A DNA stretch of 64,000 bases. Source: Hemiscyllium ocellatum (Eukaryota). The notes beneath the pieces are model-generated. The model was not told where the DNA came from. It searched no databases and worked only from the letters and a program-made list of their open reading frames with translations. The position numbers and the translations under genes were made by a program. The stretch lies in assembly GCF_020745735.1 (NCBI RefSeq), contig NC_083409.1, positions 15,719,873 through 15,783,872 on the forward strand. The letters run 5' to 3'. Shown here one piece after another: positions 6,901-64,000 of this stretch (position 1 is its first letter; each line of letters begins with the position of its first letter).

Positions 6901-7039
6901 CGAATAGATTTATCTCGTCATTTGTTTCCTGTCTGTTGGACTCACCATCTTGTCCGTGAAAGTGACTGCACTGTGCTCACAGCTTTCAATATCCTGAGAT
7001 GATTAAAAAAAACTGCACCAGCAAGAGTTCTCTCTCCAT

Positions 7040-7640: not shown

Positions 7641-9998
7641 CAATGATCGGAGGGGTACAGATTAAAGATAAATGGCCAAAGGTTAAGAGGGAACATAAGG
7701 AAAACGTTTTGACCTGAAGGGTGGTGGCAGTCTGGGACTCACTCCCTGTAAGGGTGGTTGAGGCAGGAGCTCTCCCATAACATTGACGTATTTTGATGTG
7801 CAGCTGTGATGCCAAGGTATACAGGGCTACGGGCCAAGTACTGGAACATGGAATTAGAATAGTGGGTGGTTGTTTTGACTGGCTTTGGCTCATTGGGCCA
7901 AAGAGCCTTGTTCTTGTAGACCTGTTGTAGATGTCTGACTCTGCCAGGACTCCAGCAATGTGGCTGACCCTTACCTGCCATTTGAAAGGCCGAGCAAGTC
8001 ACTCAGTTTCAGGGCAGTTAGGGATGGAGAACAAATACAGTGACACCCACATCCCAGGAAAGAATAAACAGCCTCAGTAACACCGTCCCCTGAACCTGCA
8101 GGTTTCAAGCCCCACTCCAGACACTGGAGCACGATCCTGAGGCTGGCAAAGGCAAAGACGCCATCTGCTGGATGATCGGTTAAACCACTGCCCTCTCAGG
8201 TCGATGTGAATATAAGGGCTTTGAGACCATGTCAGGGAAACTGTCCCCAGTGTGCTGGCCAATGCTTCTCTTATAACCAATGGCATTAAAACAGAGACAT
8301 AAACAAAATACTGCAAATCTCAAATAGAAGCACGATGCTGGAGAAAGGGAACAGGTGCAGCCTCTGTGGGGAGAGGAGGAGTTAATTTTTTGTTTTATCA
8401 AAAAGGCAGCACATTTTTATTTTATTTTATGTTGTCTTACACTATTTTATTTAAATCTCGTTGAAAAAAAATTAGCCCGCTTGATTGGTACCACATCCAC
8501 ACACATCCATTCCCTCCACACCGACGCTCAGTAACGGCTCTGTGTATTATTTACAAAATGCACTCCAGAGATTCACCAAAAATCCTGAGACAACATCTTC
8601 CAAAGTCATGATTACTTAAATCAAGGACAAAGGCAGCAGATACAATGGGAACATCACCCCAGCAAGTTCCCCTCCAAGCCATTCACTAGATTGACTTGGA
8701 ATTATAACACTGTTCCTTCATTGTCACTGGGTCAGAATCCTGGAATTCCCTTCCTAAATGCATTGTGTATCTACCAACAGCACACAGACTGCAGGGGGTC
8801 AAGAAGGCAGCTAATCACCACCTTGTCCAGGGCAATTAGACATGGACAGTAAAAAGGCTGGGAAAAGTAAGAGTAGGCGTGCTTAAGGACCAGAAAGTGA
8901 GACTGTGATGTTTCAGTTTTTCCTGAACATTGGTGTGACCACATCTCAAATACTGAGGGTAGTTTGGTCTCTTTATTGAAGGAAAAATATAAATGCATTG
9001 GAGGTGTTTCAGAGGAGTTTTACTCGATTGATCCCTGGAATGAGTGGGCTGTGTGATGAGGAAAGGTTGGAAAGACTGGCCTTGTTCTCAGTGGAGTTTA
9101 GAAGAGTGAAGGGTTTTCCTGTCCCATAGTATTCTCCAACTCCCTATCTGCCTCCCTCATGGGTCATCCCTTATTGAACTGTGCTGTCCTGAGGCCTATA
9201 ACTTCCTTCTGGAACAAAGTCTCCAGGTATCTCCGCCCCTCCCGGATGTATCATTTTTTTCAACTCAGCCTCCAAGTGGGAGTTCCGGTAGTTTTATACA
9301 TTCACTACACATGTATTTACACTGAATCATTTCAATTAAATAAATATATTGAGCTCACTTATAAATGAAAAATATCCATTCCTTCATTGGACCAGTAATT
9401 GTCTTCAATCTCTGTTTTGAAGTTTCAGTACTTTCAATTTATAAACCTTCCCTAATGGACATGTCCTGAAGCAATCTATTTAGACAGTCCCTCATACTGA
9501 ACAATTCCCAGCTGATCTGCTTACCAGACTCCTATTCTCTTGTTTATCATTTTGTTTCATTCAAACCAAGTGCATGTGCAGGCTCCCAGCAGCTGAAGTG
9601 ACAGTTCCAAATCCGTTTGGAAAAGCAAAGGTAGGCTCCGTCCCCAAATTCTCCGAACTTCCACACTGACCAAACTTCCCAGCATTCCCCTCTGTGTTGG
9701 CTGCACTCAGTGCTAGCTGCAGTATTAAGGCTGCCCTGTATTTATACTGTTTCTGACTTATATCACTCCATTCTGTTGTGCTGTTGTTCAGGATCTGGGT
9801 TAAGCTCACTAATTTCTCAGTGGAGAGCTTCCTTTCTTCAGCCTGAGAGAGACTTTACATGTGCAACCAGCAAATGGGACTACAATGTTGGAATCTGTTT
9901 TCAGGATTGATGGGCTCGATGGTTTGATTCAATGAGATGAGATATGAAGTACCTGTGACTCTTGTTGCAATCCAACCTTCTCTGTCTAACCTCTTCAG

Positions 9999-10035
9999 GA
10001 GTCGACATTTCAGGTGTAACCCTTCTTCAGGACTC
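9999..10035 (-). ncRNA. Minimal type I hammerhead ribozyme motif (Penelope-like element type)
   Basis: Minus strand reads GAGUC-CUGAAGA-A-GGG UUACA CCU-GAAA-U-GUC-GACUC: perfect 5-bp helix I, intact core, GUC cleavage triplet. A second CUGAAGA follows immediately. Confidence 0.7.
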
Positions 10036-10124
10036 AGGGTGGGTGTTGGGGGAGCTGTGTGGTGAGGTGGGGATAGGTTGAGAAAGGGAGAGAGTATGAC
10101 CTGATTGGTTGATGGGAGACATGA

Positions 10125-12338
10125 ATCTGGATGGCGTTATCGCGAATAATATGAAATTGAGTAATTTTGGTGTGGGGAGGGGCAGCTGACAGGGATGTTC
10201 CCTGTTGCCCCTACTGTTTACCTTGGTACTTGAACCACTGGCAGGGACTGTCTGAAAAGACCCTGAAATAACGGCACCGAAAGTGGGAGTTGGGGAAACA
10301 AAAATCACTCTCTACACGGACAATGTCCTCTTGTTTTTAGCTAACTCTGAAAAGTCCATACCTTGGCTAATAAAAAAAAATTAAATTATTCGTCAACCTT
10401 TCAGGATACAGAATAAATTTTCCAAAATCGGAAGTTCTGCCTGTGGGAGATTGGTGCAGGTACTGAAACTGGAGGACGGAATGGAGTTTCCTTTTAGATG
10501 GTCACAGAAAGGTTTTCCCTATCTGGGAATTTTTATTACCCCTCACTTCCCGCAACTGTATGGAGCTAACCTTGTGTCGCTGTTTGAGAGGGTAAAGCAG
10601 GACTTGCAGCGATGGGAGCGAATACCCAGATCATGGCTTGGCCGTATAGCCTTGATTAAAGTGAATGTTGTTCCTTGGTGGTTCTATTCTGTGAGGATGC
10701 TCCCTTTGTTATTACCCAACCAGGTGCTGCGGAGGTTTGTGGGATGGCTTGGATCATTTATTTTGCGCTGTCGGTGCAATTTAATTAAATTTACCAAATT
10801 GCAACTTCCGCAGGATATGGAGGGTGGGCGGTGGACCTCCCAGATCTGAAGAGTATCAAAGCAGCACCCTGTTGCTATATGTAGGTGAATGGGTGCGTAA
10901 TGACTCAAAGTCGATGTGGCTTGATGCAGAGGCCTCGCAGGTGAGATGTCCCTTTAGAAACTTACTGTTCATGGATAAGATGAGATCGGTAGGTGCGCAT
11001 TGTGAAAGTCTGATTATCATAAATACAGTAAAGCATGGAGGATAATGCGGCAGGGTGGAGGCTATTTGTAGTTCACCCCGTTAGTGGGAGCCCCAGGATT
11101 TAGACTGGGATCAAAGGACTCCAGCTTCAGAGCATGGGAGCGTAATCGAATACCCTGTCTGGGAGATTTATTTGAGGGAGGGGTCTTGATGTTTTTTTTC
11201 GCCAATTAGGTCAGAAATATGGAATCCCTAATTGGGATCTTTTCCGATATTTCCAGGTTAGGGATTACATACAGAAGAAGACTACGTTCTTGACCCAGCC
11301 CAACAAGTCGGATATAGAATGAAGAGTGCTCCGATGAGGGGGCGCTCTTTCAGTTAGTACCTCATATCATCTGCAGAGAGGGAATGCCTTGGGGGAATTG
11401 GAGAGAGTCAGGGAGATTTGGAATCAGGAGTTAAGGGAAGAAATCTCATCAGAAATGTAGGAGGATTAATGAGGGAATGTAAAGAAAATTTCAATCTACA
11501 ATAAGGCACAAGCAATGCAATTGAAGATCTTTCCCAGGACCCAAATGGAGCCAGAGAGGTTAGCAAAGTTTAAGAAAGGGTCTTCCCCAAAATGTCCCAA
11601 ATGTAAAAACAGTATTGACATCCTTACACATTGCTTTTGGTCCTGTTACAAGATCCGGGATCCTGGGGGGGCATAGTGAATGAGCTGGAGACAATCCTGG
11701 GAATGGAAGTTTGGGAGGATCTGGTGTCCCTCCTTTTGGGAATGACCGAAACTTCCCTCTTTGGGTGAGCATGGGAAGAGGTTATTCAACATTCTTACAC
11801 ATTGTGTGAGGAAGGACATACTAATGAATTGAATATCAGCAAAGCCTCCAGGTCTTTCAAGGTGGCACAGCCTTGTGATGGAGCACGTCCCTCAAGATTA
11901 CCTGACAGTATGGGGCACCACGGAATGGAGCAATTTTATAAGACAAGGCGGCCCTTTCTAATTTACATCAACATGGATCTGTCGGCAGTACTGATTAGGG
12001 CCTTTATAGAGGATCGAGGGCTGTATGTGGTGGTCCGGGGATCACGGGGATTTGGTGGGTGGTCTCATAAATATGGGTATAATCACTGTTGTTCCTGTGG
12101 ACAGGAACTTTGATGGAGAGTGCGGCGAGTGGAGCCATGTAATATAGTACAATGTAGTGCAATTTAATTTTAATGGATTGTACTTAAATTTAGTGTTATT
12201 TTATTTAATTTGAGTTTGTGCTGATTTGTTTTAAGTTAAGCAAAATATGAGACAACTGTATCTTGAACAGTAGCCGGCGGTTTATTCACATTACTGTATT
12301 ATAATATAATTTTTTTCAATAAATATTGACTAGAAAAA
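10125..12338 (+). mobile_element. Degenerate L1-clade LINE, 3' half
   Basis: Translation gives decayed L1 RT motifs (QGC.L.PLLF..V.EPLA, LY.D.VLLFL, SGY.IN..KS). ORF 10451..10849 has YLGI and WLGRIALIK.N..P. The element ends in AATAAA (12318) and an A-rich tail. Confidence 0.8.
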
Positions 12339-12431
12339 GAGGAACATTCGAGAAAATTAACAGACAGAAGCACCATGCAATAGAAATGATCAGGAGTGGT
12401 GAGAAAGGAGGGAGAAAAAGAGATTCCTGTA

Positions 12432-12434
<3 letters not shown>

Positions 12435-12463
<29 letters not shown>

Positions 12464-12520
12464 CAAAAGAGAATGAGTTCTGAAGGGGAGAGAGAGAGAG
12501 TTCTGAATGAGAGAGAGAGA
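12435..12520. repeat. (GA)n microsatellite cluster
   Basis: Several gagagaga runs. Confidence 0.9.
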
Positions 12521-13192
12521 GTTCAGAAGAAGTTCTGAATTAGTGCAAGTGATCTCAAAAGCTGCTCAAAGTTTTCAACGTTTTCCTGAAAATCACAAAT
12601 ACAGTCCACTTACATGAATAAAAATCAATTGTCCTTTCTGAAATAATTTAAAACCAAAAAATAAAATCAAGACTTATAATGAAGTAAGTGCAAGTATTTA
12701 AAATCCTCAATACTTCTGCCTTCCACTTCAGTCATGCAGATATAGTCCTCCTCACTCAGAGGGAGGATTCAGTGTCTGGTATCAGCCATTGTTCAGAGTC
12801 TCAGAGCTAACATACACCAAACACATATCATCGCACCACTAGATATACTTTTTAAAAAGGTAAACGTAGGTGTAAATACAAAAACAAAATTAAATGTGCA
12901 ATCTTCTTTGAATTCAAGTCTATGCTGCAGTTTGGATAAATAAATGGGATCGGGTTGTATATAAATAGGACAGGAGAAAGGTTGGCACTTTTGGTATCCA
13001 CATCCTGCCAATCGGCTGACTCCAGTAAGGATCGATATCCCAAACCACCTACTTATTGAGGAAATTCTATGCCAGATGTCAAAACTCAATCAGTGAGAGG
13101 AGTTTAGAGGCCGAGGTGGATTCTCCTCTGCTCGGGGCATGAGGTTTGGTTTTTTTCTGGAGTCCACAAGTTGGCCGATGGCATGGCCCATG

Positions 13193-13357
13193 TTAGGATA
13201 ACATGAGTTTTAACTGTTGCCCCTGAATCTGATTCAGTACATTTATTGTGTCTTTTATCAGAACTTCAAAAATATAATCTGCCAACTGCATCTTCACACA
13301 AAGCTCATCCTCATCATAATTCACCCATTGGGCTTCCTCCTCATAAAGCTCTTGAAC
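13193..13357 (-). CDS. CEP350-family (CEP350-like/CCDC187) terminal coding exon
   Basis: ttttttctggcag acceptor, then VQELYEEEAQWVNYDEDELCVKMQLADYIFEVLIKDTINVLNQIQGQQLKLMLS*. This matches the recalled CEP350 C-terminus VQELHEEEAQWVNYDEDELCVKMQLADGIFETLIKDT. Absent from the ORF track. Confidence 0.92.
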   Translation of the reverse strand, partial: VQELYEEEAQWVNYDEDELCVKMQLADYIFEVLIKDTINVLNQIQGQQLKLMLS

Positions 13358-15533
13358 CTGCCAGAAAAAACAGAGGGGGTGTTATTGTTTTTATATCAAG
13401 ATTTATTTGTTACAGCTCTTTCCTCTCGTACTGAGCAGCGTTTGCACTGAAATCACTCAGACTGCAGGCCTCCCACTTTCCTTGTGCCCAGTATCACACA
13501 ATTGGCCATTCCCACACAGCAAGTGGAGCTTGGACAGGAGTTCTGGAGGGCTCGCTGCGAGATCAATGGAGAGCCACTAGTTATTCTTGTACAAAACAAT
13601 ACCAAGTCTGAGAAGGTTAAGGACTGGCTACATAAATTAGGTCTGAGCTGAATATTTCCAGCATTTTTTACTTTTATTTGATAAACGAGGCCTGCATTCT
13701 CTTGAGTAAAGATGACTAGGGGATGGATCTATAGAAGTGACTGAGATGATTAAACGATTTCACAGCGAAGGAAGTGAGAAACTAGTTCCTTTGGCGAGGC
13801 ATGCCAGAAATAGGGCATGCAGGAAAATAAGACTTAGGTTGATTAGGGGGGTGATGTGAAGAAGCCTTTTGTCACACAAACAATACTAAAATAATCTGGT
13901 TCCTTCCAGCCTTAAAAACTATTGTGACTGTTACAGCATTTCAATATGAGTGTTGACAGATATTTGTAAGGTCAAATAACAGTTCGGAAAAATTAGGAGA
14001 TAAATATACAGAGGTAGATACAAATCAGCTATGATTAGGAGTACGAGAACAGAGTGAAGGGTGCTGCTGGCTTAATCCTGTTCCTACCTGGTTTTGAATT
14101 TGATTCCAATGCCACAACTCCTCAAACCAGTGAGATCTATCACCAATATTGCCAGTAACATCATAAACGAGTGGAGATGTTTTACTCAGTATGCACAACC
14201 AGAAAGGAATACCCACCACAAGGAAAGAGCTGGTGAGTGTAACTGAATTACACGTTTTAACTTTAGGCTGGCCCTCTGCCCTGGTGTAGCTGTGGCCTGA
14301 CGGTATCACTACTTGAGCTGGTGCAGAGCAGAGACTTCCAACCCTTGCCTAATGGACGCACACTATCAGCTGGAAATGTTTGATCCAAAGAGGGAAAAAA
14401 AGCAATGATTTTAAATTTTTGGCATACCAAGCACCCAATTTTTTAAAACTTCAGTGTTGGGATGCATGTTGCACCCCCGCCATTTCTCTTTGGAAAGATA
14501 TTTGTCTTGAAGTGCTACAGCCTGCGTGTTGAAGGTACTCCCACAGCACTGCAAGCTCAGGGATTCCAGGAGATTAACCATGTAAATATAAAAGGAAAGG
14601 TGATATCTGACCAAGTCAAGGTGGTGGTGTGGCCTGAAGATAACGGTGTTCTTACAGACCTGTTAAACTCATCAATCTGCTGACACATGTTGTGCTGTGA
14701 CACACCAACACATGGGAAGGACTGGAAAGGTCTGCAAAAACTGTCTTCTAATTTTTCTATACTTTTGATTTTGGACTCAAATGGGGATAAAGCAATTTTA
14801 AACCCCAAGGATTGTTCAGGGATTGCTGGCACTTTTCATTAGCAAGTTCCCTGACACACACTAAGTGCTACTCACTTTCAAACAAGCTCCAGCCAAGGGC
14901 TGTGTTCAATGGGAGCTTCAGTCAATAGTAAGTAGCTAACTAGTCACTAGGCCACAGACAAATATCCTTCGGACAAAAACGGAGATTGGCTCCCAGGTAA
15001 CTGATCAGCCGAGGCTGTATACAAGTGAATTGAGAAATCACCAGATCTCCACAAGTTGAGGATCTGTCTCCGCAGTGAAAAGTCGAAAGAAAACCAGCTT
15101 CTTTTCCCTTCAGCACTTGCTGTAAGCTGTGGCTATTAATTGATAAGTCGCAGACTTGTACATGTGTGAACTAGTCACCCTGTGCCTCCTGAAAACAAAT
15201 GGAAGCATCTGGAGAAGGAAGATCAAGGAACAGCATTCTGATCAGCACAAGGATTATCTCAAGAAAAGCCATCAATAGGTACCATGGAAGTACGTTCCCA
15301 GTCTTTCTCTTTATGCAAAACACCCAGTGCACTTTGTCCCTGTTTTTCTATCTGTGTATGTGTAATGAGGAATGCATGTGGGAGGGGTTGTTAGTTTTAG
15401 TTAGTAGTTATATGCCAGTAGTTGGTAATTGTTTGCATTTTTTGTAACAAACTGTAACTCTTGTTAAGCAAAGAACCCTGACCTGTACTTTCTGTAAAAC
15501 TGGGTCTAAAAGACAGGTAAGTGAGGAACCAAA

Positions 15534-27362: not shown

Positions 27363-27862
27363 NNNNNNNNNNNNNNNNNNNNNNNNNNNNNNNNNNNNNN
27401 NNNNNNNNNNNNNNNNNNNNNNNNNNNNNNNNNNNNNNNNNNNNNNNNNNNNNNNNNNNNNNNNNNNNNNNNNNNNNNNNNNNNNNNNNNNNNNNNNNNN
27501 NNNNNNNNNNNNNNNNNNNNNNNNNNNNNNNNNNNNNNNNNNNNNNNNNNNNNNNNNNNNNNNNNNNNNNNNNNNNNNNNNNNNNNNNNNNNNNNNNNNN
27601 NNNNNNNNNNNNNNNNNNNNNNNNNNNNNNNNNNNNNNNNNNNNNNNNNNNNNNNNNNNNNNNNNNNNNNNNNNNNNNNNNNNNNNNNNNNNNNNNNNNN
27701 NNNNNNNNNNNNNNNNNNNNNNNNNNNNNNNNNNNNNNNNNNNNNNNNNNNNNNNNNNNNNNNNNNNNNNNNNNNNNNNNNNNNNNNNNNNNNNNNNNNN
27801 NNNNNNNNNNNNNNNNNNNNNNNNNNNNNNNNNNNNNNNNNNNNNNNNNNNNNNNNNNNNNN
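27363..27862. other. Assembly gap (500 N)
   Basis: Exactly 500 N, a round number typical of a scaffolding placeholder. Confidence 1.
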
Positions 27863-31806: not shown

Positions 31807-32135
31807 CTACACACATTCTGATCTCCTGATGCTCTTGCTGAGGGGAGAGGGGAGGGTCACGTGGGTGAGGGCACAGGAGAAGCGAGCGTCGGACTCCCAG
31901 TCAGACCCAGAGAGGGTCAGCAGGCTGCTGACACTGTAGGTGCTGTCCGAAGCTCGCAGGTAGTTGCTGGTCTGAACCCCGTCTGAAATGACTGCACCGT
32001 CCTTCTTCCACTGCACCTCCAGCTCATCGGGATAGAAGTGATTGGCAAGGCACACCAGGGTGGCAGTGCCCTTGGCATTGACCTGCTCCGGGGAGGGGGG
32101 CAGCAGGGTCAGCTTGGGCTGAGAGTTGTCACCAC
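31807..32135 (-). CDS. IGKC: Ig light-chain constant exon (kappa/NS4-like), intact
   Basis: ttgtctttcag|(S)GDNSQPKLTLLPPSPEQVNAKGTATLVCLANHFYPDELEVQWKKDG...DSTYSVSSLLTL...FSCALTHVTLPSPLSKSIRRSECV*. Both C1-set cysteines, the Trp and the penultimate interchain Cys are present. Confidence 0.97.
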
Positions 32136-34429
32136 CTGAAAGACAAGAGAAACAATTTTAATCCCTGTTATTCGAAGGGATTTTAACTCTCTGAACATTC
32201 ACTGGCAAGACAATCCATTTGAACATTTGTAGCCAATACCTAACAAACCCCAGTAAAGAACAGGCATTGTTCAAATTGCTTCTTGGGATGTGAGTGTCAC
32301 TGCTAGGATCAGCATTCATTGCCCATCCCTAATCACCCAGAGGGCAATTTAGAGTCAACCACATCGCTGTGGGTCTGGAGTCACATGGTGAGGATGGCAG
32401 TTTCCTTCCCTAAAGGACATCAGGGAATCAGATGTTTTTTTCCTGACAATCAACAATTGTTTCATGGTCATCATTAGACTCTTAATTGCAGATTTTAAAA
32501 ATTGAATTCACATTCCACCATCTGCTGCGGCAGGATTCTAACCCTGGCCCCCAGAACATTAATCTGGATCTCTGGATGAACAGCTCAGCAATAGTACCAT
32601 TAAATCATCACCTCCTTTATCTGATTTTTAGTTGCGAGTGAAAGCAAGAAGTTTGTTTCTGAACAGGGTGCTTAGGAAAAGTACAACTGAAAGACTCCCA
32701 ATTCATCCCAAAAAAGATTAGTTCCTTGAAAGTGGAGTTGCAGGTAGGTAGGGGGGTGACGAAGTCATTTGGCATGCTTTCCTTTATTGGGCAATGCATT
32801 GAGTATTGGAGTTGGGAGCTGTTGCACCTGTACAGGACATCAGTTTGGCCCCTTTTGGAATACTGTGTGGAATTCTGGCCTTCCTGCTTTAGGAACATTG
32901 TTGGGAACATTAAAATGGTTCAGAAAAGATTTCCAAGGATGTTGCCAAGTTGGAGGGTTTGTGCGATCAGGAGAGGCTGAATAGGCTGAGGCTATTTTCC
33001 CTGGATCGCTGGAGGCTGAGGGATGACCATATCGAGGTTTCTAACATCATGAGGGGCATTGATCAAATGAAACAAGAAGATATTTTGCTCAGAGTGAAGG
33101 ATATGGGCCAAATGCTGACAAATGGGACTAGATTAATTTAGTTTATCTGGTCGGCATAGATGAGTTGGACAGAAGGGTCTGTTTCTGTGCAGTACATCTC
33201 TCTGACTCTATGACTCTATGTCTCTGTGGCTGGCATGGATGAGTCAGATCAAAGAGTCTGTTTCTAATTGTGACTCTAATTGTGTTTCAGTCAAGCCCTC
33301 AGCACCTCAGGCTCTCCCAAAACATTTACATTTTGTTTGAAAACCAGTCAATTTTGCAATTTCAGGAATGGGCAGACAATTTCTACACAGCAAGATCCCA
33401 CTGGAAGCAATGAGATCAAAGAGCATTCTTCATGATTTTGGTTCAAGGATAAATATTGTCCTGAACTCAACCCAAAGAGAAAGTAATTTGGTTCAGTTGG
33501 ATGGAAATTGAGAAAACGGAAGGGAAAGGAGAAGGTAGGATTGTAGTTAGTGATGGGATTGATTGTTACCAGAAAATAAAAGGAAGGGACAGGAGTTTTG
33601 AATATCAAAGGGATCATAAAAGTGCAGGGAAATCAATAATAGATCAAACTTAAAGACTTTGTGTCTAAATGCACGAAACATTTCGAGTAAGGGAGAAAAA
33701 TGATGTCACAAATCCAGGTAAATGTCTTCAAGGCCGAGATTGATAGATTCTTGTTGTCTCGAGGAATTAAGGGCTGCGGGGAGAACGCTGGTAAGTGGAG
33801 TTGAAATGCCCATCAGCCATGAGTGAATGGCGGAGTGGACTCGATGGGCCGAATGGCCTTACTTCCACTCCTATGTCTTATGGTCTTATGGTCTTATAAA
33901 TTGAGTTTCCAAGGAATTTAAACTAGTTAAAGTGGAGGAGGGCTCTGGAGAGATTATTCAAGATTCTAGAAGATGTAAAAGGACAGAGAGTGTGGAAAGG
34001 ATCAGGTATCGAACGTAAAGCACAGCAGATAAGAGGACAATGATGGGAAGGAGGGCAGTCAATGCAGGACTGAGGGTGTTGTACTTAAATGCACACAATA
34101 TACACAATGAGCTTGTAGTGCAGATTGAAACTGGCAGGTACGATGTTGTGGGTATCACAGAGACATGGCTGTAAGGGGATCCGGGCTGGGAACTAAATAT
34201 CCAAGGATACATTTCCATCAAAAGGACAGGGAGATGGGCAGGGGGGAAGAGTTGGCTTGTTAGTAAGAAATGACTTTAAATCAATAGCAAGAAATGATAC
34301 AGTCAGAAGGTGTAGAATCTGTGTGGGCAGAGTTGAGGAACCCAAGAAATAAAGAATCTGATGTAAGTTATGTTCAGGTCTCCAAGCAGTAACCAGGGTG
34401 TGGGGAAGAAAATCAATCAGGAGACAGAA

Positions 34430-38011: not shown

Positions 38012-40039
38012 AATGTTATGCCATTATTTGAGAAAGACTGTAAGGAAAAGCCAGGGAACTATAAACCAGTGAGCCTGATGTCAGTGCTGGGTAAGATGTT
38101 GGAGTGGATTCTGTGGGTTAGGATTTACGTTCTTTGGATAATCAATGTGGTTTTATGCATAGAAAATCATGTCTCCTGAATTTGATTGAGGAAGTGACAA
38201 AGAAGATTGATGAAGACAGAGCAGTAAACATTGTCTATATGGACTTTAGCAAAGTGTTTGACAAAGTTCCACATGATAGACTGGTTCGCAAGGTTAGACC
38301 ACATGGGATCCAGTGGGAGTGAGCCATTGGGGTAAAAAAATTGGATTGAAGATAGGAGACAGAGAGTGTTGGTAAAGGGTTGTTTTTCAGACTGGAAATC
38401 TGTGAATAGCTGTGTGCCACAAGCATTGGTGCTGGGTTCACTGCTTTTGTCTTTTAAAGAAATGATTTGGATGTGAATATAGGAGTTACAGTAAGTTTGT
38501 AGATGACATCAAAATTGGCGTGATAGTGGATAGTGAAGTAATTCATCTCAGGGTACAGCGGGATCTTGATCAGATGGGGCAATGGGCAGAGGTGTAGCAA
38601 ATGGAGTTCTGTTTAGTTAAATGCGAGATGTTACATTTTGGAAAGGCAAACCAAGGCAGGAGTTATACAGTTAATGGGAGGGCCCTGTGGAGTGTTGCTG
38701 AACAAAGAAACCTAGGGGTGAAGATGCAGGTGGATTATTCCTTGAAAGTGGGGTCACAGGTAGACAGGGTGATGAAGAAGGTGTTGGGTACGCTTGCCTT
38801 TATTGGTCACTGCATTGAGTACAGGAGTTGGGACATCATGGTGCAGCTGTACAGGAGATTGGTGAGGCCACTTTGGGAATGATGTGAACAATTCTGATCA
38901 TTCTGCGATAGGAAGGATGTTGTTAAACTTAAAAAGCTGCAGGAAATATTTACAAGGACATGGCCTGGAATTTGAGGGTTTGAGCTACGGGGAAAGGCTG
39001 ATGAAACTGTGGCTATTTTTCCTGCAGCATTCAAGGCTGAGGGATGGCCTTATAGATGTGTATAAAACCATGAGGGGCATGGACAGGTTGCATATCCAAG
39101 GTCTTTTCCTTTGGAAAGGGAGTCCAAAACAAGAGGGCATAGGTTTAAGGCGAGAGGCAAAAGATTCAAAAGGGATCTGAGCGGTAACTTGTCACACAGA
39201 GGGTGGTATGTGTATGGATCGAGTTGCCAGAGAAAGTGTTGGAGGCAGATACAATTACAGCATTTAAAACACATTGGGTTGGGTACACGGATAGGAAGGG
39301 TTTTGAGGGATGTAAGCCGAATGCTGGTTAATAGGATGAGGTCATTTAGGATATCTGGTTACCACGGACAAGTTGGACTGAAAGGTCTGTTTCCACGCTG
39401 TATGACTCCATGACTATAAGACGCTGGAAAAGCTGAGACTTTTTACTCTGATGCGTAAGAGTCTGAGGAGTGACTTATAAACCTTATAGAGGTTTATAAA
39501 ATCATGAGGGTCATAGAAAATGTGAATAAATCAGGAAGGAGGTGACGTTTTGTAGAAATGGCAAAAGAAATTCCCAAAGATCATTTCAGGGATGAGGAAC
39601 ATCAGTTATGAAGAGAGATTGGAGAATTTGGGACTGTCTTCTTTGGAGAAGGCTGAGAGGAGATTTGTTCGAGGAATTAAAACCAGGAGGGGCCTGGACA
39701 CAGTAAATAGGGAGAAAATGTTCCCAACTGAGAAATAATTGAGAGGGAGAGGCCATGGATTGAAAATAATTGGGAAAAGTAACAAAAGTGAGATAGGGAA
39801 CAACATTTTCAGGTAGTGTTTGGTTAAGGTGTGGAATGCACTGCCTGAGAGTGTGGTGGAGGCAGCTTCAATTGAAACATTCCAAAAGGAATGAGACTAT
39901 TATTCAAAAAGGAACAATGTGCAGGTGACAGGGAGAAGGCAGCAGAATGACACTCAGTGAATTGCTCATTCGGAGAGCCAGTACAGACAGGATGGACAGA
40001 ATGGCCTCCTTGTGCACTGTAACAATTCTCTGATTGTGT

Positions 40040-40440
40040 GATTGAGCAGAGTTAAAGCTGGGGGAGGTGGGAGCTCGGTGTCTCACTGTGCTGCTGCTGC
40101 TGCTGTGGTCAGTGAGATCAGAGACTGGGACAGGGAGCCAGAGCTCACATCAAACTCTACCCGTGTCCGTCACACTGAGACTGGCAGGAGGCTACTCACT
40201 GATTTCACTCCATGCTGCAGGAATGGGACCACAGGCTGCAAATGGACAGAGCTCCTCCACACGGTGAGTAAAACTTACTGACTTATATCTTGCTTTTAAA
40301 GGGGGCAATGGAACTAAAGAAATACAGGTGGATACGCTGTTAGACACAGTGCTCTTCAATCAACCATTTCATTCACTGCAGCTCCCTACTAACACCGTCA
40401 ACAATTCAGCATTTGTGTTTTAGAAAGTGTGTTTCAGTAT
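40040..40440. promoter_or_regulatory. Candidate J-C intronic enhancer
   Basis: The main non-repetitive island directly 3' of J. It has RUNX motifs (40104-40109, 40228-40233) and E-boxes (CAAATG at 40239, CAGGTG at 40325). Function is inferred. Confidence 0.35.
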
Positions 40441-40477
40441 TGACAGGGTTACTAACATTGGATTGAGGTTTACTTAC

Positions 40478-40806
40478 TCAGTCTGAGCTTGGTTCCTTTA
40501 CCGAACGTAAAGGCCAGCTGCTATGCTGCATACAGTAATAGTCAGCGACATCCTCATTCTGAACGTTGCTGATTTTCAGGGTAAAACTGGTCCCTGATCC
40601 ACTGCCGGTGAATCGATCGGAGACTCCTGTGAATCGATTTGTTGCATAATAGATCAGGAGAGAGGGCTTCTGACCTTCTCGTTGTTGGTACCAATCAAGG
40701 GAGCTGCTAATGCTTTGACTGGCCGTACAGGTGAGTGTTGCGGTCTGGCCCCGTCCCACTGACAGCACCGGAGGAGACTGGGTCATGGTGATGTCCCCAC
40801 TGATAC
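40478..40806 (-). CDS. IGKV: Fused V-kappa/J-kappa exon (329 nt, one base short of in-frame)
   Basis: ccctcag|[52 protein letters not shown]...[14 protein letters not shown], followed immediately by J ([11 protein letters not shown]|gtaagt) in a shifted frame. There is no RSS between V and J. Confidence 0.96.
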
Positions 40807-40992
40807 CTGAGGGATCAGAGAGAAACACAGTGAAGTCAGAACTGTCACAGAAAGAGCCTGTCAAATGAGAGATTGTTGGAGACACTGAGCATTCCTCTGG
40901 TTTCAGCATTTTCCCTTCAATCACAAGTCAGTGGAATTGGAGTGAAATGGAGAGCAGCTAAAGATTCAAGGTGGAAGGAGAGAGATTTGTAC

Positions 40993-41041
40993 CTGCGACA
41001 CAGAATGCCAGGGGCCAGATCAGCTGGATGTGTGAAATCAT
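40993..41041 (-). CDS. IGKV: Ig light-chain leader exon
   Basis: acaccATG ATT TCA CAC ATC CAG CTG ATC TGG CCC CTG GCA TTC TGT GTC GCA G|gtacaa = MISHIQLIWPLAFCVA. It is 49 nt, phase 1, compatible with the V exon. Confidence 0.95.
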
Positions 41042-41100
41042 GGTGTGTGCTCCTGTCCCTGTGCCTGGTTCCTAATAAACTCTCCCTTCACTGGGCTCTG

Positions 41101-41160
41101 CTTTATAAAGCTGCAGCCTGTGAGAGTCTGACTGGGTGTTCCTCAGTATGTAAATGGCAT
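41101..41160 (-). promoter_or_regulatory. V promoter: TATA box (TTTATAAA, 41102-41109) and variant octamer (ATTTACAT, 41155-41148)
   Basis: The TATA box is about 60 nt upstream of the ATG. The octamer-like 8-mer is about 40 nt further upstream, one mismatch from ATTTGCAT. Confidence 0.75.
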
Positions 41161-42149
41161 CAGGCAGGGAGGGCCATGTCAGTCCCTCACACTTCCTCTT
41201 CTCTCTCTCTCTCTCTCTCTCTCAGAGAATCATTGATGTGAACAGCACTGAATGAGGCCATTTGGCCCATTGTATCTGTGCTGTTAAAGAAAGATCTGAT
41301 GACACTAATCTCATCCTCCAGCTCTTGGTCCATTATCCTGGAGTCTGCAGCAACACAAGGGAATATCTAATCACTGCTCCACTGTCACGAGAGTTTGTGA
41401 CTCAACCAGCCTTTCAGGCAGTGAGTTCCAGACTCCCACCACCCTCTGGTTGAAAACATTTCTCCTCAATTCTCCTCTCTCTCTCGAACTCGACTGGGCT
41501 TGGACTCACTCGAATTCAGATGGATGTATAAAATTCTAACAGGGCTGGGCAGGGACGAGGTTTCCCCTGGTTGGGAAGTCTGGAACCAGGGGACACAGTC
41601 TCAGGGGGATACAGGGTAGTCCATTTTTGGACTGAGATGAGGAAACATTTCTTCACTCAGAGGGTGGTCAACCTGTGGAATTCTCTTCACTGAAGGCTGT
41701 GGAGGATAAGGAACTGAATATATTCAAGAAAAAGAGAGAGATAATTGTTTGCATTTTAACAGCATGAAGGGAATAGGGAGAAAGCACGAATATGGCTTTG
41801 AGATAGAGGATCAGCCATGATCATACTGAATGACAGAACAGGCTCAAAGGGCTGAATGGCCAACTCCTGCAGCAGTTTCTATGTGTCCATGTCTGTGTTA
41901 CCTACAATCTCTGTCCCAGGTTACTGAGTCCTTGTCTCATGCAAAAAGTGTCTTCCTACCCACCCTATCACTGCTCCGAATATTCTTATCCCTCTCTATC
42001 AGGTCCCATCTCAGCCGTCACTGCTCCAAGGAAAACAACCCCAACCTTTCCAATCTTTTCTCAAAGCTCAGATTCAGTCAGCATCCTGGGAAATCTCCCC
42101 TGTACCCTCTCAGGTACAATCACATCCTTCCGAGAATGTGGTGACCAGG

Positions 42150-42485
42150 ACATGTCCCTCTCTCTCTGTCTCACATCTGCCACATCTTTCTCTCCACCAC
42201 TCTCTCCCCCACTGTTAATCGCTCATGTTTTCTCTCTCTCTTTCTCACACTCTTGTCTCATAGTCACTCCCTCCAACTCACTGATGATTGCTCACTCCAT
42301 TTCATAATCTCTGTTTCTCCATCTCTCTGTCTCTGTCACTCGCTCCCTCTCTCACTTCAATTAAAAGCCTCCAACTGTTATCTTTCCCTCTATATTCCTC
42401 CCTCTGTCTCTCTCCCTCCCTCTCTACATCCCAATCTACAGTCGCTCTCCCTCCCTCTCTATCATTCTGTACCTACCCATACTCA

Positions 42486-42521
<36 letters not shown>

Positions 42522-42830
42522 TCCACCCTACCCTCTCTGTCAATTCTCTTCATGCTTAGTCTCACACCCATCCTATCTCTCACTCTCTCTCTCTCTCACC
42601 TTATCTCTTTGTCTCTCTCCATCCCTATCAGTCACACTGTCTCACATCTTGTTTCTCTCTCTTTATCCCTCAACTTCACCATTACGACCTCCCTTTACCT
42701 CTCTTTTGGTTTCATCACATATCTCACACTGTCTCAGATGTTCCTCCCTCCCTCTCTCTCTCTCACTCAAACACAAACCCAGACACTCTCATTCTATCTC
42801 TCTCTCTGTCTCGCTTCTCTCTCTTTCTGA
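42150..42830. repeat. Pyrimidine-rich (CT)n low-complexity tract
   Basis: About 680 bp dominated by ctctct and ctca repeats. Confidence 0.9.
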
Positions 42831-43439
42831 CAGTGTCCTGGGTGGTGACAGTTAAATGCAGGATAAATCTCCCTCTGCTCTGCCCCACAAATGGATGTTA
42901 CCCCTTGACCCCTGTCTTCTCCTGGAATAAAGCCCCATTTCCCACAATGACCAGGGTTTGGTCTGTCTCGGGAAGATGGACGATTCTTGTGAAATGAAGG
43001 GCAGTTCTGTGCTGTTCTGTTCTGTTGGCCTGTTCTCACTGGGGACTGGTTTGGACACAAACCTCATTCCATGAAGGCCCAGCAGAGAGAGGAGATCCTC
43101 AGGCCATCAGTGTGAGCTGGAGGGACAGGACAGACTCTGACCTACTGACCCATCCTGTCCATTCACAACATGTTCCAATCCCTTCCCCTCTCCTTCCCCT
43201 TCCACAGTCAGTCTTTTCTGAAATGGAGTGGTCCCTTCCCTGTCTCACACCAAGGAGGAGATGGACAGATATTTAATGGGTAATGGGTTAAAGGATGATG
43301 GAGAGTGGGCAGGAATGTGGAGTTGAGTCTGAGATGGGATCAGCCATGATTGTATTAAATGGTGGAGTGGGCTCGAGGGGCTGAATTGCCTGCTCCTGCT
43401 CCTAGTTCTTATGTTCCTCACCCCCTCCCCCATTCCTCT

Positions 43440-45320
43440 TACTGCAACTTTGTGAACCATCTCGGACCGTTTTGAACATTGAAGGTGCTATGTGACTTCA
43501 AGATTTGTGTGGATTTAATGTGGGGACAAAATTGTGCAGGGGGCTGTGATAGCTCCTGCAGTTGGATATCCTACTGGCAACCTCCAGCCTTCCACATTAA
43601 CAATGGGGAAGTGGGAGAGGACAGAATGTACTGCAGGGTCCATGGAACTGTACCCCAGCAATGTGGTTGACCCTTAACTGCCCTCTGAAATGGCCGAGCA
43701 AAGCTCTCAGTTGTATCAATTATGACAATATTTCAACAAAGAAATGAGACCGGACGGACCACAGGCATCGATCTAGACACAGAAAAGACAATGACAGAAA
43801 CAGTCCTGTCTACCCTGCTCCATCCTCCTTACTGACATCTGGGAGCTAGGGCCAAATTCAGGAGAGCTGTCTTACAGACTAGTCAAGCAACAGCCTGACA
43901 CAGTCATATTCACAGAATCATACAGACAATGCCCCAGACACTACCATCACTGTCCCTGCATGTGTCCTGTCCCACCAGAAAGGCAGACCCAGTAGAGCTG
44001 ATGACACAGTGGTCTACAGCCAGGAGGGAGTTACCCTGGGAAGTCTCAAAGTTGGCTCTGGACCCCGTGAAGACTCATGAAACTAAGTTAAACATGGGCG
44101 AGGAAACCTCCTGGTGATTACAAGATATCTTGCTCCCTCGGCTGATGAATCAGTCTCTCCTGGATGTTGAACAACATTTGGAGGAAGCACTGAGGGTGAT
44201 GACAGCAGAGAGTGTACTCTGGGTGGGGGGGTTTCAATATCCACCACCGAGAGTGGCTCGGCAGCAGCATTACTGATCGAGCTGGTTGGTTCCTCATGGA
44301 CGTAGCTGAGGACTGGCTCTGCAGCTGGTGGTGAAGGAACCAAAAATTTGGAAAAAGATGCTTGACCCCACCCTCACCAATCTTGTGGCTGTAGGTACAT
44401 CTATCCTTGACAGTATTGGTAAGAGTGACCATCACACAGTCCTTGTAGAAACAAAGTTTGACCTTCACATTGAGAATCCCTCCATTGTGTTGTGTGGTAC
44501 TATCACCGTACTGAATAGGACAGACTTTGGACAGATATTGCAACTAAAGTCAAGCTCATAAATGGGGATGATTGCCAAAGATTTCACAATGTTCAGCACC
44601 ATTCTCAACTCCACAGATACTGAAGCAGTCCATGTTCAAATACAACAATATCTGGACAATATCCAGGTTTCATCTCAGGAGCAGTCTTTCCTATCGGTGT
44701 CATGCAAATGCCAGCCAATGACCATCAGCAATAAGAGACAATCTAACCATCGTCCCTTGACAGTCAATGCTATTACCATCACTGAATCCCCACTATCAAC
44801 ATTCTTGAGATGCCATTGACCAGAAATACAACTGGACTCACCACAGAAGCATAGTGGTTACAAGAGCAGGTTAGAGGCTAGAAATACTGTATCGAGTAAC
44901 TCACCTCCTGATTCCCCCAAAGCCTGTCAACCAAGTCAGGAGTGTGAGCAAATACTCCCCACTTGCCTGGACAGGTGCAGCTCCAACAACATTCATAGAC
45001 TGATAGTGTCACAGAGTCATATGGCAGAGAAACAAACCCTTAAGCCAAACTATTCCATGCTGACCAGGGTTTCTGAAGTGAACGAGTCTCATTTGCCTGC
45101 ATTTGGCCCGTATCCCTCTAATCTATTCCTGTCTATGTCTTTCTCATCCAATCGAAAAGCTTGATACCATCCAGAGCCAAGCAACCTGCTTGATTGGCAT
45201 CATATTCTCAAAGCATCCACTCTCACCATTCCCGATGCTCAGTAGCAGAAGTGTGTATTATCGGTAAAATGCACTGCAGAAACTCACCAAAGGTCCTCAG
45301 ATAGCACCTTCCAAACCCAT
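43440..45320 (+). mobile_element. Degenerate, internally deleted L2/CR1-group LINE
   Basis: Endonuclease-like remnants (LDPTLTNL...SIGKSDHHTVLVETK in ORF 44328..44561). The 3' pieces are similar to 18880-19500. Confidence 0.65.
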
Positions 45321-46080
45321 GGACAAACATAGAAATCGCAGGAAAAGCTCAGTAGGACTGCCAGCATCTGGGGAGAGAAATCAGAGTTAATGTTTCGTGC
45401 TTGACCTGTGCATCTCTCTTCACAGATGATGCCAGACCTGCCGAGCTTTTCCAGCAATTTTGATCTTTATCTCGGATTCACAGCATCCGCATTTCTTTTG
45501 GTTTCCTTCCAAACCCACATCCACTTCTATTTCGGAGACCAGGAGCGGCAGACACATGGGAACACTATGAGCTGCAATTTCCCCTCGGAAAAGCTTAGCA
45601 TCCTGACTTGGAAATATGTTGTTGATCCCTCAGCCTTGCTGGGTTAAAATACTAGCATTCCCTCCTGAAGAGCATTGTGAGTCAACTTACAGCTTGTGGA
45701 CTACAGTGATTCAAGAAGGCAGCTTCCCACTGCCTTCTCCAGGGTAACTAGGGACAGGGTAGAAAATGCTGGGACAGCTGGTGAAGCCCACTTCCCACGA
45801 GTGAATATGCAAAACCGAATGAAGTGTTCCTCAGGAGGGGAGAGGGAATGTTCAGGATCCTGAGCTCCATTTCCCAGCCCAGGCAGTTTGTCTCCCAATG
45901 AATGAATGAGATACCAATTTGGAACCCAGATTAAGGGCAGTCTTGCGCTGTCTACCCAGGTCTACAAGAGACAATTAAGATCGAGCTGAAAAGGAAAGAT
46001 TTGCTAGATTATGGGGAGAGAGAGGAGTAGTAGGACTGCTTGGGTCACTCACAGACACAATGGGCTGAATGGCCTCCTCT

Positions 46081-46376
46081 TGTGCTGTCAGATTCCAGGG
46101 AGTGCAGATGGTTCACAGTTTTCTCCCGTCTCAGTAACAAAGGTCCAGCTGCTCTGAGCTCCTTCTTTCACTTCCTCTCTTGGTGAAGTTTCAACCTTGC
46201 GATCTGACAGTCTTTGCAGTTATTTTTTGCACTGGGGCTTTCTGCTGTGGTCAGAATCTCTAATAATAAGTGTCCAATCAGTGACAATCACAGCAGCTAA
46301 GAGCAGTCAGGACTGAGAAGCCAGGCTCACTGGGAAACACATTGAAAAGATCAAAGCCATCCCCTTCAGCTCCCAG
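46081..46376 (-). promoter_or_regulatory. Conserved block A: candidate light-chain enhancer (EICE, E-box, RUNX, CCAAT)
   Basis: GGAAGTGAAA on the minus strand (46175-46166), CAGCTG at 46146-46151, TGTGGT at 46246-46251 and CCAAT at 46274-46278. About 94% identical by hand alignment to the inverted block at 63618-63914. Confidence 0.55.
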
Positions 46377-46760
46377 ACTCTTTACTACCTTAGATTCATC
46401 TTTGAGGCTGATCTGATCTCCACATCCTCCACATCACAAAGATCAGACACTGCAAATCTCAGCTATGTGATGGGGACTCCAAACATGACCATTCCAATGT
46501 TATCCTGGCCCACATCACAGCCACCACCTTCGGTAAACATCAACTCATCCCAAACTCTGCTGCCAGTATCCGAACTCCCACCAAGTCCCATTCCCCCATT
46601 CCCTCCCCTTGTGCTCACTGACCAACATTGGCTCCTAGTCCAGCAACATCTTGATTTGCAAGTTCTCATCCTTGTTCTCAAACCTCTCGCCTCCTTCCAC
46701 CCTCCCCATCTCACCCTCCAAACCACCTCACTCAGAGTGATCAACAATCTTGGAAATATG
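46377..46760 (+). mobile_element. L2-like LINE fragment (homologous to the reverse complement of 63240-63617)
   Basis: Shared decayed sequence, for example ttctcatccttgttctcaa versus ttgagaacaaggatgagaa, with visibly lower identity than the adjacent block. Confidence 0.6.
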
Positions 46761-47814
46761 GTTCTCTATTTCTTCATCCAAGTCATTGAGAAATATTGTG
46801 TGAAGCTGAGGTCCCAGCACAGATCCCTGGGGACACCACTATTCACATCTTGCTCATTGGAGGACGTGCACATTATCCCTCCTCTCTGTCTCCTAGCTCT
46901 GGACCCAAGATAAATGCATTTCTCAAATTCCATCTGATTCCATGTCTCTTTTTAAATGTCTTGTGGAATTCCCTATGGACAATAGCCATCAACATTCCCT
47001 TCTATCCCACATTAGTGAGCTCCTAACAAAGTGTAATCAGGTTAGTTAAAGATGTTTGAACCTTTGTAAATCCATGCTGACTCTCTCGGAACAGTTCATG
47101 TTAGTTAATCATTTGTTAGTCATCCTGTCTCTAAAAACAGATTCAATCAATTCCTGACAACAGACATTCAATGGAGATGTTCATTGTGAATGAGGTTAAT
47201 ATACAGCCAGCACTGACACGAGGGGCTGAACAGCCTCCTCCTGTGCTGGAGCCTTCTCTGTCTCCTTGACAGAAATATTTTACAGATTAAAAAATAAAGA
47301 CCAACAGGAAATTTAAAAATACAAATTAAAACCGCCTCAAACAATTTCTATATACAGGGCCAGGTGACGTGTAATTGCGATGGGGAAGCTGGTGGAGCCC
47401 ATTGTAGCTCAGAGTGACCACATCTACAGCAAGTGTTGGTTGCTCAAGGCACTCCAGCTCAGAGTTGATGAGCTGGAATCTGAGCTTCAAACACTGTGAC
47501 ACATCAGGGAGGGGGAGAGTTACCTGGACACTGTGTTTGGGGAGACAGTTACATCTTGTAGGTTAAATACTTCAAATTATGGCCAGTGGTCAGGGACAGG
47601 AGGGTGTGACCAAAAGTGAACAGGTCGATGCAGCCTGGATTTAGCCTTTCAGGTGCCTCAGCTCCTTGTCCAACAGGAATGAGGTACTTGCTCCCTGTGT
47701 CAATGAGGAAAAGGATTGCTTTTGGAAACTAATGTGGATACACTGCAGAATGGTCAAGCGTGGTTTGGAGCATTTTGGCGATAGTGACCATAACTCTATC
47801 AGGTTCAAAGTCAT

Positions 47815-62960: not shown

Positions 62961-63617
62961 ACAAGTATCCTTCCACTATGTCCCTCTGCTTTCTCCCATT
63001 CTCGCCAGTTAGAGAAAAGTATTTATCTTTGGTCAGAAATTAGTTTGGAGGTAGGAGACAGAGAGGAGGGATAATGTGTGTGCTCTCCAATGAGCAAAAT
63101 CTGGATAGTGGTGTCCCCAGGGAATTGGGCTGGAACCTCAGCATTTCACGATATTTCTAAATGACTTGGATGAAGGAATAGACAGCCATATATCCAAGAT
63201 TGTTGATCACACTGAGTGAGGCAGTTTGAAGGAGGTTACAGAGATAGGGAGAGTGGAGGACAGGGAGGGACTTGAGAACAAGGATGAGAATTTGAAAATC
63301 AAGGTGTTGCTGGACCAGGAACCAATGTAGGCACAGGGCGCAGGGGGTTGGAGGAATGGGATTTGATACGAGTTTAGATATGGGGCAGCAGAATTTGGGA
63401 TGAGCTGAAGGTTACGGAGGGCAGTGGCTGTGATGTGTGCAAGCGCAACATTGGTATGGTCATGTTTGGAGTCCCATGCACATGACAGAGATTTTCAGTT
63501 GCTGATCTTTGTGAGATGGAGGATATGGTGCTCAGATCAGCCCCAAAGATGAGGCCAAGTTTGTAAAGAGTCTGGTTGAGCAGCAGGCAGTGCTCAGGGA
63601 GAGGGATGGAATTTGTA

Positions 63618-63914
63618 CTGGGAGCTGAAGGGGAATGGCTTTGATCTTCCCAATGTGTTTCCCAGTGAGCCTGGCTCCTCAGTCCTGACTGCTCTTAGCT
63701 GCTGTGATTGTCACTGATTGGACACTTATTATTAGAGATTCTGACCACAGCAGAAAGCCCCAGTGTAAAAAATAACTGCAAAGACTGTCAGATCGCAAGG
63801 TTGAAACTTCACCAAAAGAGGAAGTGAAATAAAGAGCTCGGAGCAGCTGGATGTTTGTTACTGAGACGGGAGAAAACTGTGAACTGTCTGCACTCCCAAG
63901 AACCTGACAGCACA
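63618..63914 (+). promoter_or_regulatory. Conserved block B: inverted copy of block A
   Basis: ACCACA at 63744-63749, GGAAGTGAAA at 63820-63829 and CAGCTG at 63844-63849. Confidence 0.55.
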
Positions 63915-64000
63915 GGAGGCTGGTTCTGGGATTTTTCTTTTCAGAAACAGCACAGTGATGGGGAAAAAGGACAGTCACTCTCTCACAAACACATACACCT

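Follow-up and report, generated by a model that had tools for sequence, protein, structure and literature searches.

How the dozens to hundreds of separate antibody clusters of sharks are controlled is the question raised by this locus, and the sequence block described here makes it testable. The window, i.e. the whole 64-kb stretch of DNA from Hemiscyllium ocellatum that was analysed, includes a kappa light-chain cluster and, upstream of its V gene, a block of about 300 bp that recurs in the window as an inverted second copy. The original prediction, made from the letters of the window, was that this block is selectively conserved and that it represents a light-chain enhancer carried by each cluster and located upstream of V rather than 3' of C; whether it recurs at a fixed position upstream of kappa V genes was named as a check. 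Literature searches revealed no described shark light-chain enhancer, and according to a review, shark antibody promoters have been reported only at V segments (PMC5192425).

The kappa cluster in the window and the loci used for comparison

A stop-free translation at window positions 40481–40927 on the minus strand identified the gene downstream of the block, as its V-domain part (residues 46–143) is 100% identical to an H. ocellatum protein listed at NCBI as "immunoglobulin kappa light chain-like". The gene (40480–41240, minus strand) includes a promoter (41042–41240), a leader exon (40993–41041) with the ATG at 41041, a leader intron of 186 nt (40807–40992) and a germline-joined VJ exon (about 40480–40806), all on the minus strand, as is the kappa C exon of the same cluster at 31810–32157. 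The leader intron was found exactly spliced in contigs from two RNA runs, with joints at 40803–40805 to 40990–40992. In the closest clusters of Chiloscyllium punctatum and Stegostoma tigrinum, V and J are separated by about 500–700 nt, whereas the gap here is zero and the two segments are fused. Given the split V and J in the related clusters, the window gene is a germline-joined derivative. The V-J join at 40480–40520 is one base out of frame; the matching NCBI protein model is still 238 amino acids long. The window also contains a 500-N assembly gap at 27363–27862.

Kappa loci of related sharks were fetched via the V protein with up to 10 kb of flanking sequence, five from C. punctatum (designated L001–L004 and L006) and one from S. 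tigrinum (L005). All three species belong to the Orectolobiformes, and relative to the first block copy of H. ocellatum (designated Hoc1) L001 represents another genus and L005 another family. Locus L002 includes two block copies, L002a and L002b, the latter inverted.

Two inverted copies of the block

The first copy occupies positions 46077–46374 on the minus strand, in the orientation of the V gene and 5.0–5.3 kb upstream of the minus-strand ATG at 41041, in agreement with the 5 kb claimed for it. The second copy (Hoc2) is found on the plus strand at 63576–63919, including a V-distal extension of 45 nt at 63576–63620, and faces toward an expected V gene that would lie beyond the window end, outside the view. 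A repeat search of the window returned inverted arms at 46076–46364 and 63631–63919 (289 nt, 94% complementary), and alignment of 46077–46374 with 63621–63919 gave 16 mismatches over 297–298 aligned bases, which at 16/297 corresponds to 94.6% identity. The inverted pair of ~300 bp, ~94% identity and ~16 mismatches was therefore recovered much as it had been counted by hand.

On the V-distal side, homology between the arms continues to 46927 and 63009, with an identity of 81.4% for 46377–46677 and 83.2% for 46678–46927, both significantly below that of the block (Fisher p = 5e-7 and 2e-5, respectively). This V-distal flank (46377–46927, minus strand) is present in both arms, with 81–83% identity between them and 77–85% identity to C. 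punctatum, and its distal end is overlapped by an antisense LINE reverse-transcriptase remnant at 46734–47100. The adjoining shared LINE remnant region is thus more diverged than the block (81–83% versus 94.6%), as had been stated.

On the V-proximal side, similarity between the arms ends at 46076 and 63919. The abrupt stop that had been noticed is therefore real between the arms, but it does not mark the end of conservation in the family, as it arises because the arms bear different old flanks. In the first arm (type A), the V-proximal flank at 45821–46075 on the minus strand ends in the 3' tail of a transposable element (TE) at about 46050–46088, which abuts the block. This flank is 85–86% identical in L001 and L005 and 76% identical in L002a, and is absent from the second copy. 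In the second arm (type B), the V-proximal flank at 63920–64000 on the plus strand is homologous to the flank of the inverted C. punctatum copy L002b. Within this type B flank, at 63951–63995 (about 880–930 on the minus strand in L002), CACAGTG is followed 27 nt later by ACAAACACA; the pair resembles a recombination signal sequence with a non-canonical spacer and is kept in the C. punctatum copy.

The first copy is without 45 nt at its V-distal edge (46375–46377 as compared with 63576–63620). This is a clean deletion with CCAG at both ends of the deleted piece, and since the piece is kept in all five other copies and missing only from the first, the family element is ~345 nt long. At 46318, the first copy carries a private change to A, with G in the second copy and in nearly all contigs of two DNA runs. 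Large insertions are present at both block edges in L001, and none was found inside the block in any of the six copies.

Linkage of the block to kappa clusters in three genera

In C. punctatum, the block was located at 3323–3619 of L001, 6.4 kb upstream of the gene start, and at 5006–5313 of L002 (L002a), 4.7 kb upstream of V, with the second, inverted block of that locus (L002b) at 982–1300. In S. tigrinum, it was located at 7304–7650 of L005, 2.4 kb upstream of V. Loci L003 and L004 include too little upstream DNA and were left out of the linkage test. In H. ocellatum, C. punctatum and S. tigrinum alike, all placed copies share the orientation of the nearby V, except for the inverted L002b. 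The block-to-V distance ranges from 2.4 to 6.4 kb across the four clusters in which placement was possible, and this variation is due to TEs inserted between the block and V. Hence, the expected position upstream of kappa V holds for side and orientation in three genera but not for distance.

The expectation of one block per cluster is likewise only partly borne out. The block is present upstream of V in L001, L002 and L005, but is missing within 9.9 kb in one of the four testable clusters, L006, where none was found in the continuous upstream DNA (4170–14071) and an 884-N gap, 10–11 kb upstream, may conceal one. The L006 cluster carries V, J and C, and its C exon is 95.9% identical to that in the window. 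No block-like sequence was found downstream of C in L002 or L005, and the block lies upstream of V, and not 3' of C, in all four clusters where it could be placed, which confirms this part of the original prediction. Both H. ocellatum and C. punctatum have clusters paired head to head, and the two blocks of a pair point outward, away from one another. In L002 the paired blocks are separated by 3.7 kb, and in the window they are separated by 17 kb of DNA that is filled with LINE fragments.

Copy number of the block

Contigs of two DNA runs (X1 and X3) were placed on window positions 40640–46639 at 80% likeness, and their depths, which are summed word depths and not copy numbers, are to be read by order of magnitude only. 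For the block, the sums came to 2626 and 2262 (X1) and to 20465 and 21067 (X3), i.e. 4–8 times that of the neighbouring bins (365 and 635 in X1, 2501 and 2553 in X3). The bin of the V exon was of the same order as the block (1260 in X1 and 12475 in X3), and TE bins reached up to 80,000 in X1 and 190,000 in X3, far above it. The numbers of distinct contigs in the two DNA runs were 15 and 37 at 46318 in the block, and 11 and 28 at position 40772 in V. As an order-of-magnitude estimate, the block is about as repeated as the kappa V genes.

Sequence motifs and their retention

The ETS-IRF composite element (EICE) of the block, GAGGAAGTGAAA, is located at 46166–46177 on the minus strand in the first copy and at 63818–63829 on the plus strand in the second. 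Its 10-nt core GGAAGTGAAA, which fits the pattern GGAAnnGAAA, is at 46166–46175 (minus) and 63820–63829 (plus), respectively. An E2A-type E-box, CAGCTG (pattern CASSTG), is found 14 nt from the EICE at 46146–46151, and at 63844–63849 in the second copy. A RUNX-type TGTGGT at 46246–46251 on the plus strand lies inside a 15-nt run that is invariant in five of the six copies, and a CCAAT box at 46274–46278, also on the plus strand, is present in four of six, having been lost in both L002 copies. That GAGGAAGTGAAA, CAGCTG, TGTGGT and CCAAT are unchanged in the two window copies had been noted from the outset and proved correct. Two further calls on the plus strand are weak, namely an NF-kB-like GGGGCTTTCT at 46234–46243, which matches the consensus GGGRNWYYCC at 9 of 10 positions (no site in the block fits the strict pattern), and a MEF2-type CTAATAATAA at 46260–46269, which fits the consensus YTAWWWWTAR but is perfect only in the three closest copies.

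The motifs were originally picked from the two window copies, and they hold in independent copies. GAGGAAGTGAAA is intact in L001, L005 and L002a, and the EICE is intact in five of six copies from three genera, being lost in L002b, which has GTGGAAATGAAG instead. CAGCTG is kept in all six copies and the RUNX site (ACCACA) in five, and in L005 the EICE, E-box and RUNX sites are all intact. In L002a, these three sites show no changes in 24 positions at a background divergence of 20% (p about 0.005). Of the runs without variation in five copies, those with the EICE and the RUNX site are among the five longest. The EICE pattern is rare, at 0.12 per kb in the cluster, and its 7 occurrences in the window, against 4.4 expected, are no enrichment; the argument therefore rests on its conservation and not on its presence. 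For the E-box too, conservation counts and presence does not, as the string is common: CAGCTG (1.6 per kb), TGYGGT and CCAAT (2.3 per kb) each occur about one to two times per kb here. A second GGAAGTGAAA, at 21513 in L002, was rejected as a chance match, its surroundings not being block-like.

Conservation compared with neighbouring segments

Flanks, TE tail, V and C exons, promoter and introns of the same clusters served as yardsticks for the conservation of the block. Between Hoc1 and L001, identity was 94.6% in the block, 81.0% and 84.7% in the V-distal flanks, 86.1% in the TE tail, 83.8% in the V exon, 92.4% in the promoter, 98.7% in the leader exon with its intron, and 92.2% in the first 700 nt of the J-C intron. 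Between Hoc1 and L005, in which the V-distal flanks were not found, the corresponding values were 91.6% for the block, 85.0% for the TE tail, 86.5% for the V exon, 89.6% for the promoter, 94.9% for the leader exon with its intron, and 89.3% for the first 700 nt of the J-C intron, with 87% for the C exon and 70–82% for other colinear pieces of the J-C intron. The block exceeds its flanks in the comparison with L001 (p at most 0.001). In both comparisons, conservation of the promoter and of the J-proximal intron is on a par with that of the block, and the leader exon with its intron is kept better than the block as compared with L001 (p = 0.016) and does not differ significantly from it as compared with L005 (p = 0.17).

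Against the old paralogous pair in L002, no contrast was seen, with 80.4% and 78.6% identity for the block and 76–79% for the flanks, all segments of Hoc1 being about 76–86% identical to this pair. A site-level test of whether the same positions vary in the shallow and the deep comparisons gave no significant result (odds ratios 1.2–1.9, p 0.11–0.56). As judged by 31-mers sampled from the block, its sequence is present in runs under four organism labels (coded labels, shares up to 0.75, 0.67, 0.33 and 0.08), and 31-mers of an equally long adjoining flank were found under one organism label only, presumably that of the source species, in agreement with the better conservation of the block.

The claim of selective conservation thus stands in that the block is kept better than its TE-derived flanks and the V exon when compared with close relatives. 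It does not stand in that the promoter and the J-proximal intron match the block, the leader intron is kept equally well or better, and the excess over the flanks is zero as compared with the L002 pair. These sharks evolve slowly, and conversion may have given the block, the promoter and the two introns, leader and J-proximal, a recent history in common.

Two of these yardsticks deserve description of their own. The leader exon with its 186-nt intron (window 40807–41041; 10001–10235 in L001, 2337–2571 in L003, 2704–2938 in L004 and 10001–10235 in L005) is 97.4–98.7% identical between H. ocellatum and C. punctatum, and 94.9% identical between H. ocellatum and S. tigrinum, as compared with 82.5–86.5% for the adjoining V exon. 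A leader intron so much better kept than the adjoining exon is unusual and may reflect conversion tracts or unrecognised constraint. J together with the first 700 nt of the J-C intron (window 39800–40511, minus strand; 11223–11924 in L001, 3914–4460 in L004, 11004–11712 in L005 and 15323–16008 in L006) is 89–94% identical across the three genera, with 70–82% for more distal pieces of the intron. Besides the block, this is another island of conserved non-coding DNA; it is located where mammals have the kappa intronic enhancer, and includes E-boxes and RUNX strings but no EICE.

Gene conversion and constraint

In type A arms (Hoc1, L001, L005 and L002a), the block runs on into the TE tail, and in type B arms (Hoc2 and L002b) it is followed by another sequence, which shows homology between H. 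ocellatum and C. punctatum. As both types are present in both H. ocellatum and C. punctatum, the head-to-head A/B pair predates the split of the window family from the L002 family. Yet the block diverges by only 5.4% between Hoc1 (type A) and Hoc2 (type B), as compared with 20% between Hoc1 and L002a, both of type A. Some homogenisation between arms or clusters must therefore have occurred. The distances among Hoc1, Hoc2 and L001 are all 5.1–5.4%, and because these three copies are equidistant, the homogenisation was not species-specific.

When the block of a main-lineage copy was compared with L002a and L002b as a triplet, 12–14 changes were unique to the main-lineage copy, 35–38 to L002a and 45–46 to L002b. 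Accordingly, the main lineage has changed about three times more slowly (relative-rate contrast, p from 9e-4 to 8e-6). The largest block distance, 32%, is that between L002a and L002b, and both are 21–24% from the main group, so that no rooting fits equal rates. In the adjoining flank, the branches are equal, with 33 changes in L001 and 31 in L002b. By established theory, the neutral rate at which a family evolves in the long term is not reduced by concerted evolution. Together with the threefold slower main lineage this points to purifying selection on the main-lineage block and relaxed constraint in the L002 copies, provided that the block tree and the flank tree have central nodes equally old. 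The original prediction had allowed that recent gene conversion alone could account for the high identity of the arms. Conversion has a part in it, since the arm types require some homogenisation, but is not the whole story, given that L001 is equally similar and the main lineage slower. The 94.6% identity of the arms in the window is thus probably due to constraint combined with some homogenisation between the arms.

Probable function and alternative explanations

The block lies upstream of V in the orientation of V and is linked to kappa genes in three genera, and compared with close relatives it is better kept than both of its flanks. The main lineage changes more slowly in it, with retention of EICE and E-box. 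The best explanation, to which we assign a probability of about 0.5 from these sequence comparisons, is that in the block orectolobiform kappa clusters possess a conserved cis-regulatory element, most probably an enhancer of the B lineage acting on the V promoter 2–6 kb downstream. In such an enhancer, GAGGAAGTGAAA would be bound by a pair of PU.1/Spi-B and IRF4/8, and CAGCTG, 14 nt from the EICE, by an E-protein. Nearby RUNX-, Myb-, kB- and MEF2-like sites would join the complex, which once assembled would open the cluster and raise transcription of V. Against the enhancer reading, the window gene that the block would serve is a germline-joined VJ that is out of frame.

It is extremely improbable that the block is part of a dispersed TE or other repeat unrelated to Ig genes, even though both of its flanks are TE-derived, the TE 3' tail adjoins it at 46050–46088, and it is multi-copy in the DNA runs. 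The window holds no third copy of the block despite many LINE copies and several similar TE tails. The 122 kb of fetched loci contain no further copies either, every fetched copy being located upstream of a kappa V or representing the inverted partner of such a copy. Comparison of LINE ORF proteins with 45700–47100 detected similarity only at 46734–47100 and none in the block, and an Rfam scan of 45600–47000 gave zero matches at E values up to 1. A high-copy dispersed repeat, named in the original prediction as the result that would overturn it, is excluded by the window, contig-depth and fetched-locus evidence. We also consider it unlikely that the block has no function of its own and is a stretch homogenised among kappa clusters by conversion or unequal exchange, along with the promoter, the leader intron and the J-proximal intron, its motifs being chance passengers. 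Such a history would suit the mosaic of Hoc1-L001 divergence (1.3% in the leader exon with its intron, 5.4% in the block, 7.6% in the promoter, 7.8% in the J-proximal intron and 14–19% in the flanks), as well as the small difference between Hoc1 and Hoc2 relative to L002a despite arm types older than the L002 split, the lack of a block-flank contrast in the deep comparison and the non-significant site-level test. However, Hoc1, Hoc2 and L001 are equidistant, so that homogenisation was not species-specific; conversion is impossible between species, and the main lineage is ~3 times slower than L002a and L002b in the block, whereas branches are equal in the adjoining flank; and L002a retains its EICE, E-box and RUNX sites despite a background divergence of 20%. 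Should the block prove inactive, it would provide a clear example of mosaic concerted evolution within a multigene family.

A third explanation, which we regard as distinctly improbable, is that the block has a function other than that of a classical enhancer, serving as an upstream or sterile-transcript promoter, as a boundary between head-to-head clusters or mainly as an element that targets somatic hypermutation (DIVAC-like). The block does sit between two diverging clusters in both species, it includes a CCAAT box, and Ig enhancers bearing E-box, MEF2, NF-kB and PU.1-IRF4 sites act in the targeting of hypermutation (PMC3972084). However, the CCAAT box was lost in both L002 copies, and the presence of one copy per arm in a fixed orientation toward its V is more readily expected of an element directed at a gene than of a boundary shared between clusters. 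The contigs of RNA runs that cover the block, which could be taken for its transcripts, are unspliced and of low depth (9–129, as compared with about 1,100–700,000 in the bins of the V gene), and this fits DNA carry-over of a multi-copy sequence. Moreover, no splice joint or start was found at the block in RNA runs in which the spliced V leader is very deep. A joint from 41867 to 46051 in RNA run X17 was rejected as a cross-match between TE tails.

If the block is indeed an enhancer, a broader proposal is that the PU.1/IRF and E-protein logic of light-chain enhancers was already present in the common ancestor of sharks and bony vertebrates and took the form, in sharks, of a small upstream module that is duplicated along with each V-J-C cluster. 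We put this forward tentatively, as possible but somewhat unlikely. Were it true, stochastic activation of one module among many could explain the expression of few clusters per B cell, and the module might also steer hypermutation to genes joined in the germline.

Comparison with known light-chain enhancers

As a short, bounded element with a PU.1/IRF site that is present in three genera and has decayed in at least one old copy (L002b), the block would allow comparison of accessibility and expression from cluster to cluster, and of the grammar of antibody enhancers over some 450 million years. PU.1 and IRF4 bind EICEs at the kappa 3' and lambda enhancers (PMC13757776), and the core of the PU.1 site in mouse lambdaB is GGAAGTGAAA (PMC4872103). 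The set of E-box, NF-kB, MEF2 and PU.1-IRF4 sites is conserved in the human, mouse and chicken lambda enhancers, with little conservation between the sites, and is required for the targeting of hypermutation (PMC3972084).

The same 10-nt core GGAAGTGAAA is found in the block as in the Ig lambda enhancers (mouse E-lambda 2-4 and 3-1, human and chicken; DIVAC), and the block likewise has E-box, kB-like and MEF2-like strings nearby, within about 130 nt. Unlike the lambda enhancers, it is located upstream of V and not 3' of C, and the kB-like and MEF2-like strings come in the reverse order. The likeness is one of motifs. The kB-like string departs from its consensus at one position, and a perfect MEF2 string is limited to three of six copies. 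With the kappa 3' enhancer of mouse and human, the block shares an EICE for PU.1 and IRF4 (PMC13757776) and a close E-box (PMC3972084). The mammalian element, however, is 3' of C, as compared with 2–6 kb 5' of V here, and there is one per large translocon locus, as compared with one per small V-J-C cluster. Of the features of EICE-type light-chain enhancers, the block thus has the EICE and the close E-box, but not the location in the J-C intron or 3' of C. Hence, the block is a putative enhancer that resembles the EICE light-chain enhancers in its motifs and is set apart from them by its position 5' of V.

Per-locus enhancers are also known in teleosts, in which light chains are encoded in many V-J-C clusters (Atlantic cod light chain), as well as for the catfish heavy chain (E-mu 3'). 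These teleost enhancers have been reported inside the clusters or downstream of them, on the basis of reporter assays, and are not known to be related to the block in sequence.

Related fragments filed under bacteria

Three short shark-like Ig light-chain fragments (P0035, P0055 and P0061), 68–75% identical, were found filed under Salmonella enterica and Aeromonas veronii. They lie on contigs of 299–990 bp and most likely represent vertebrate contamination of bacterial assemblies.
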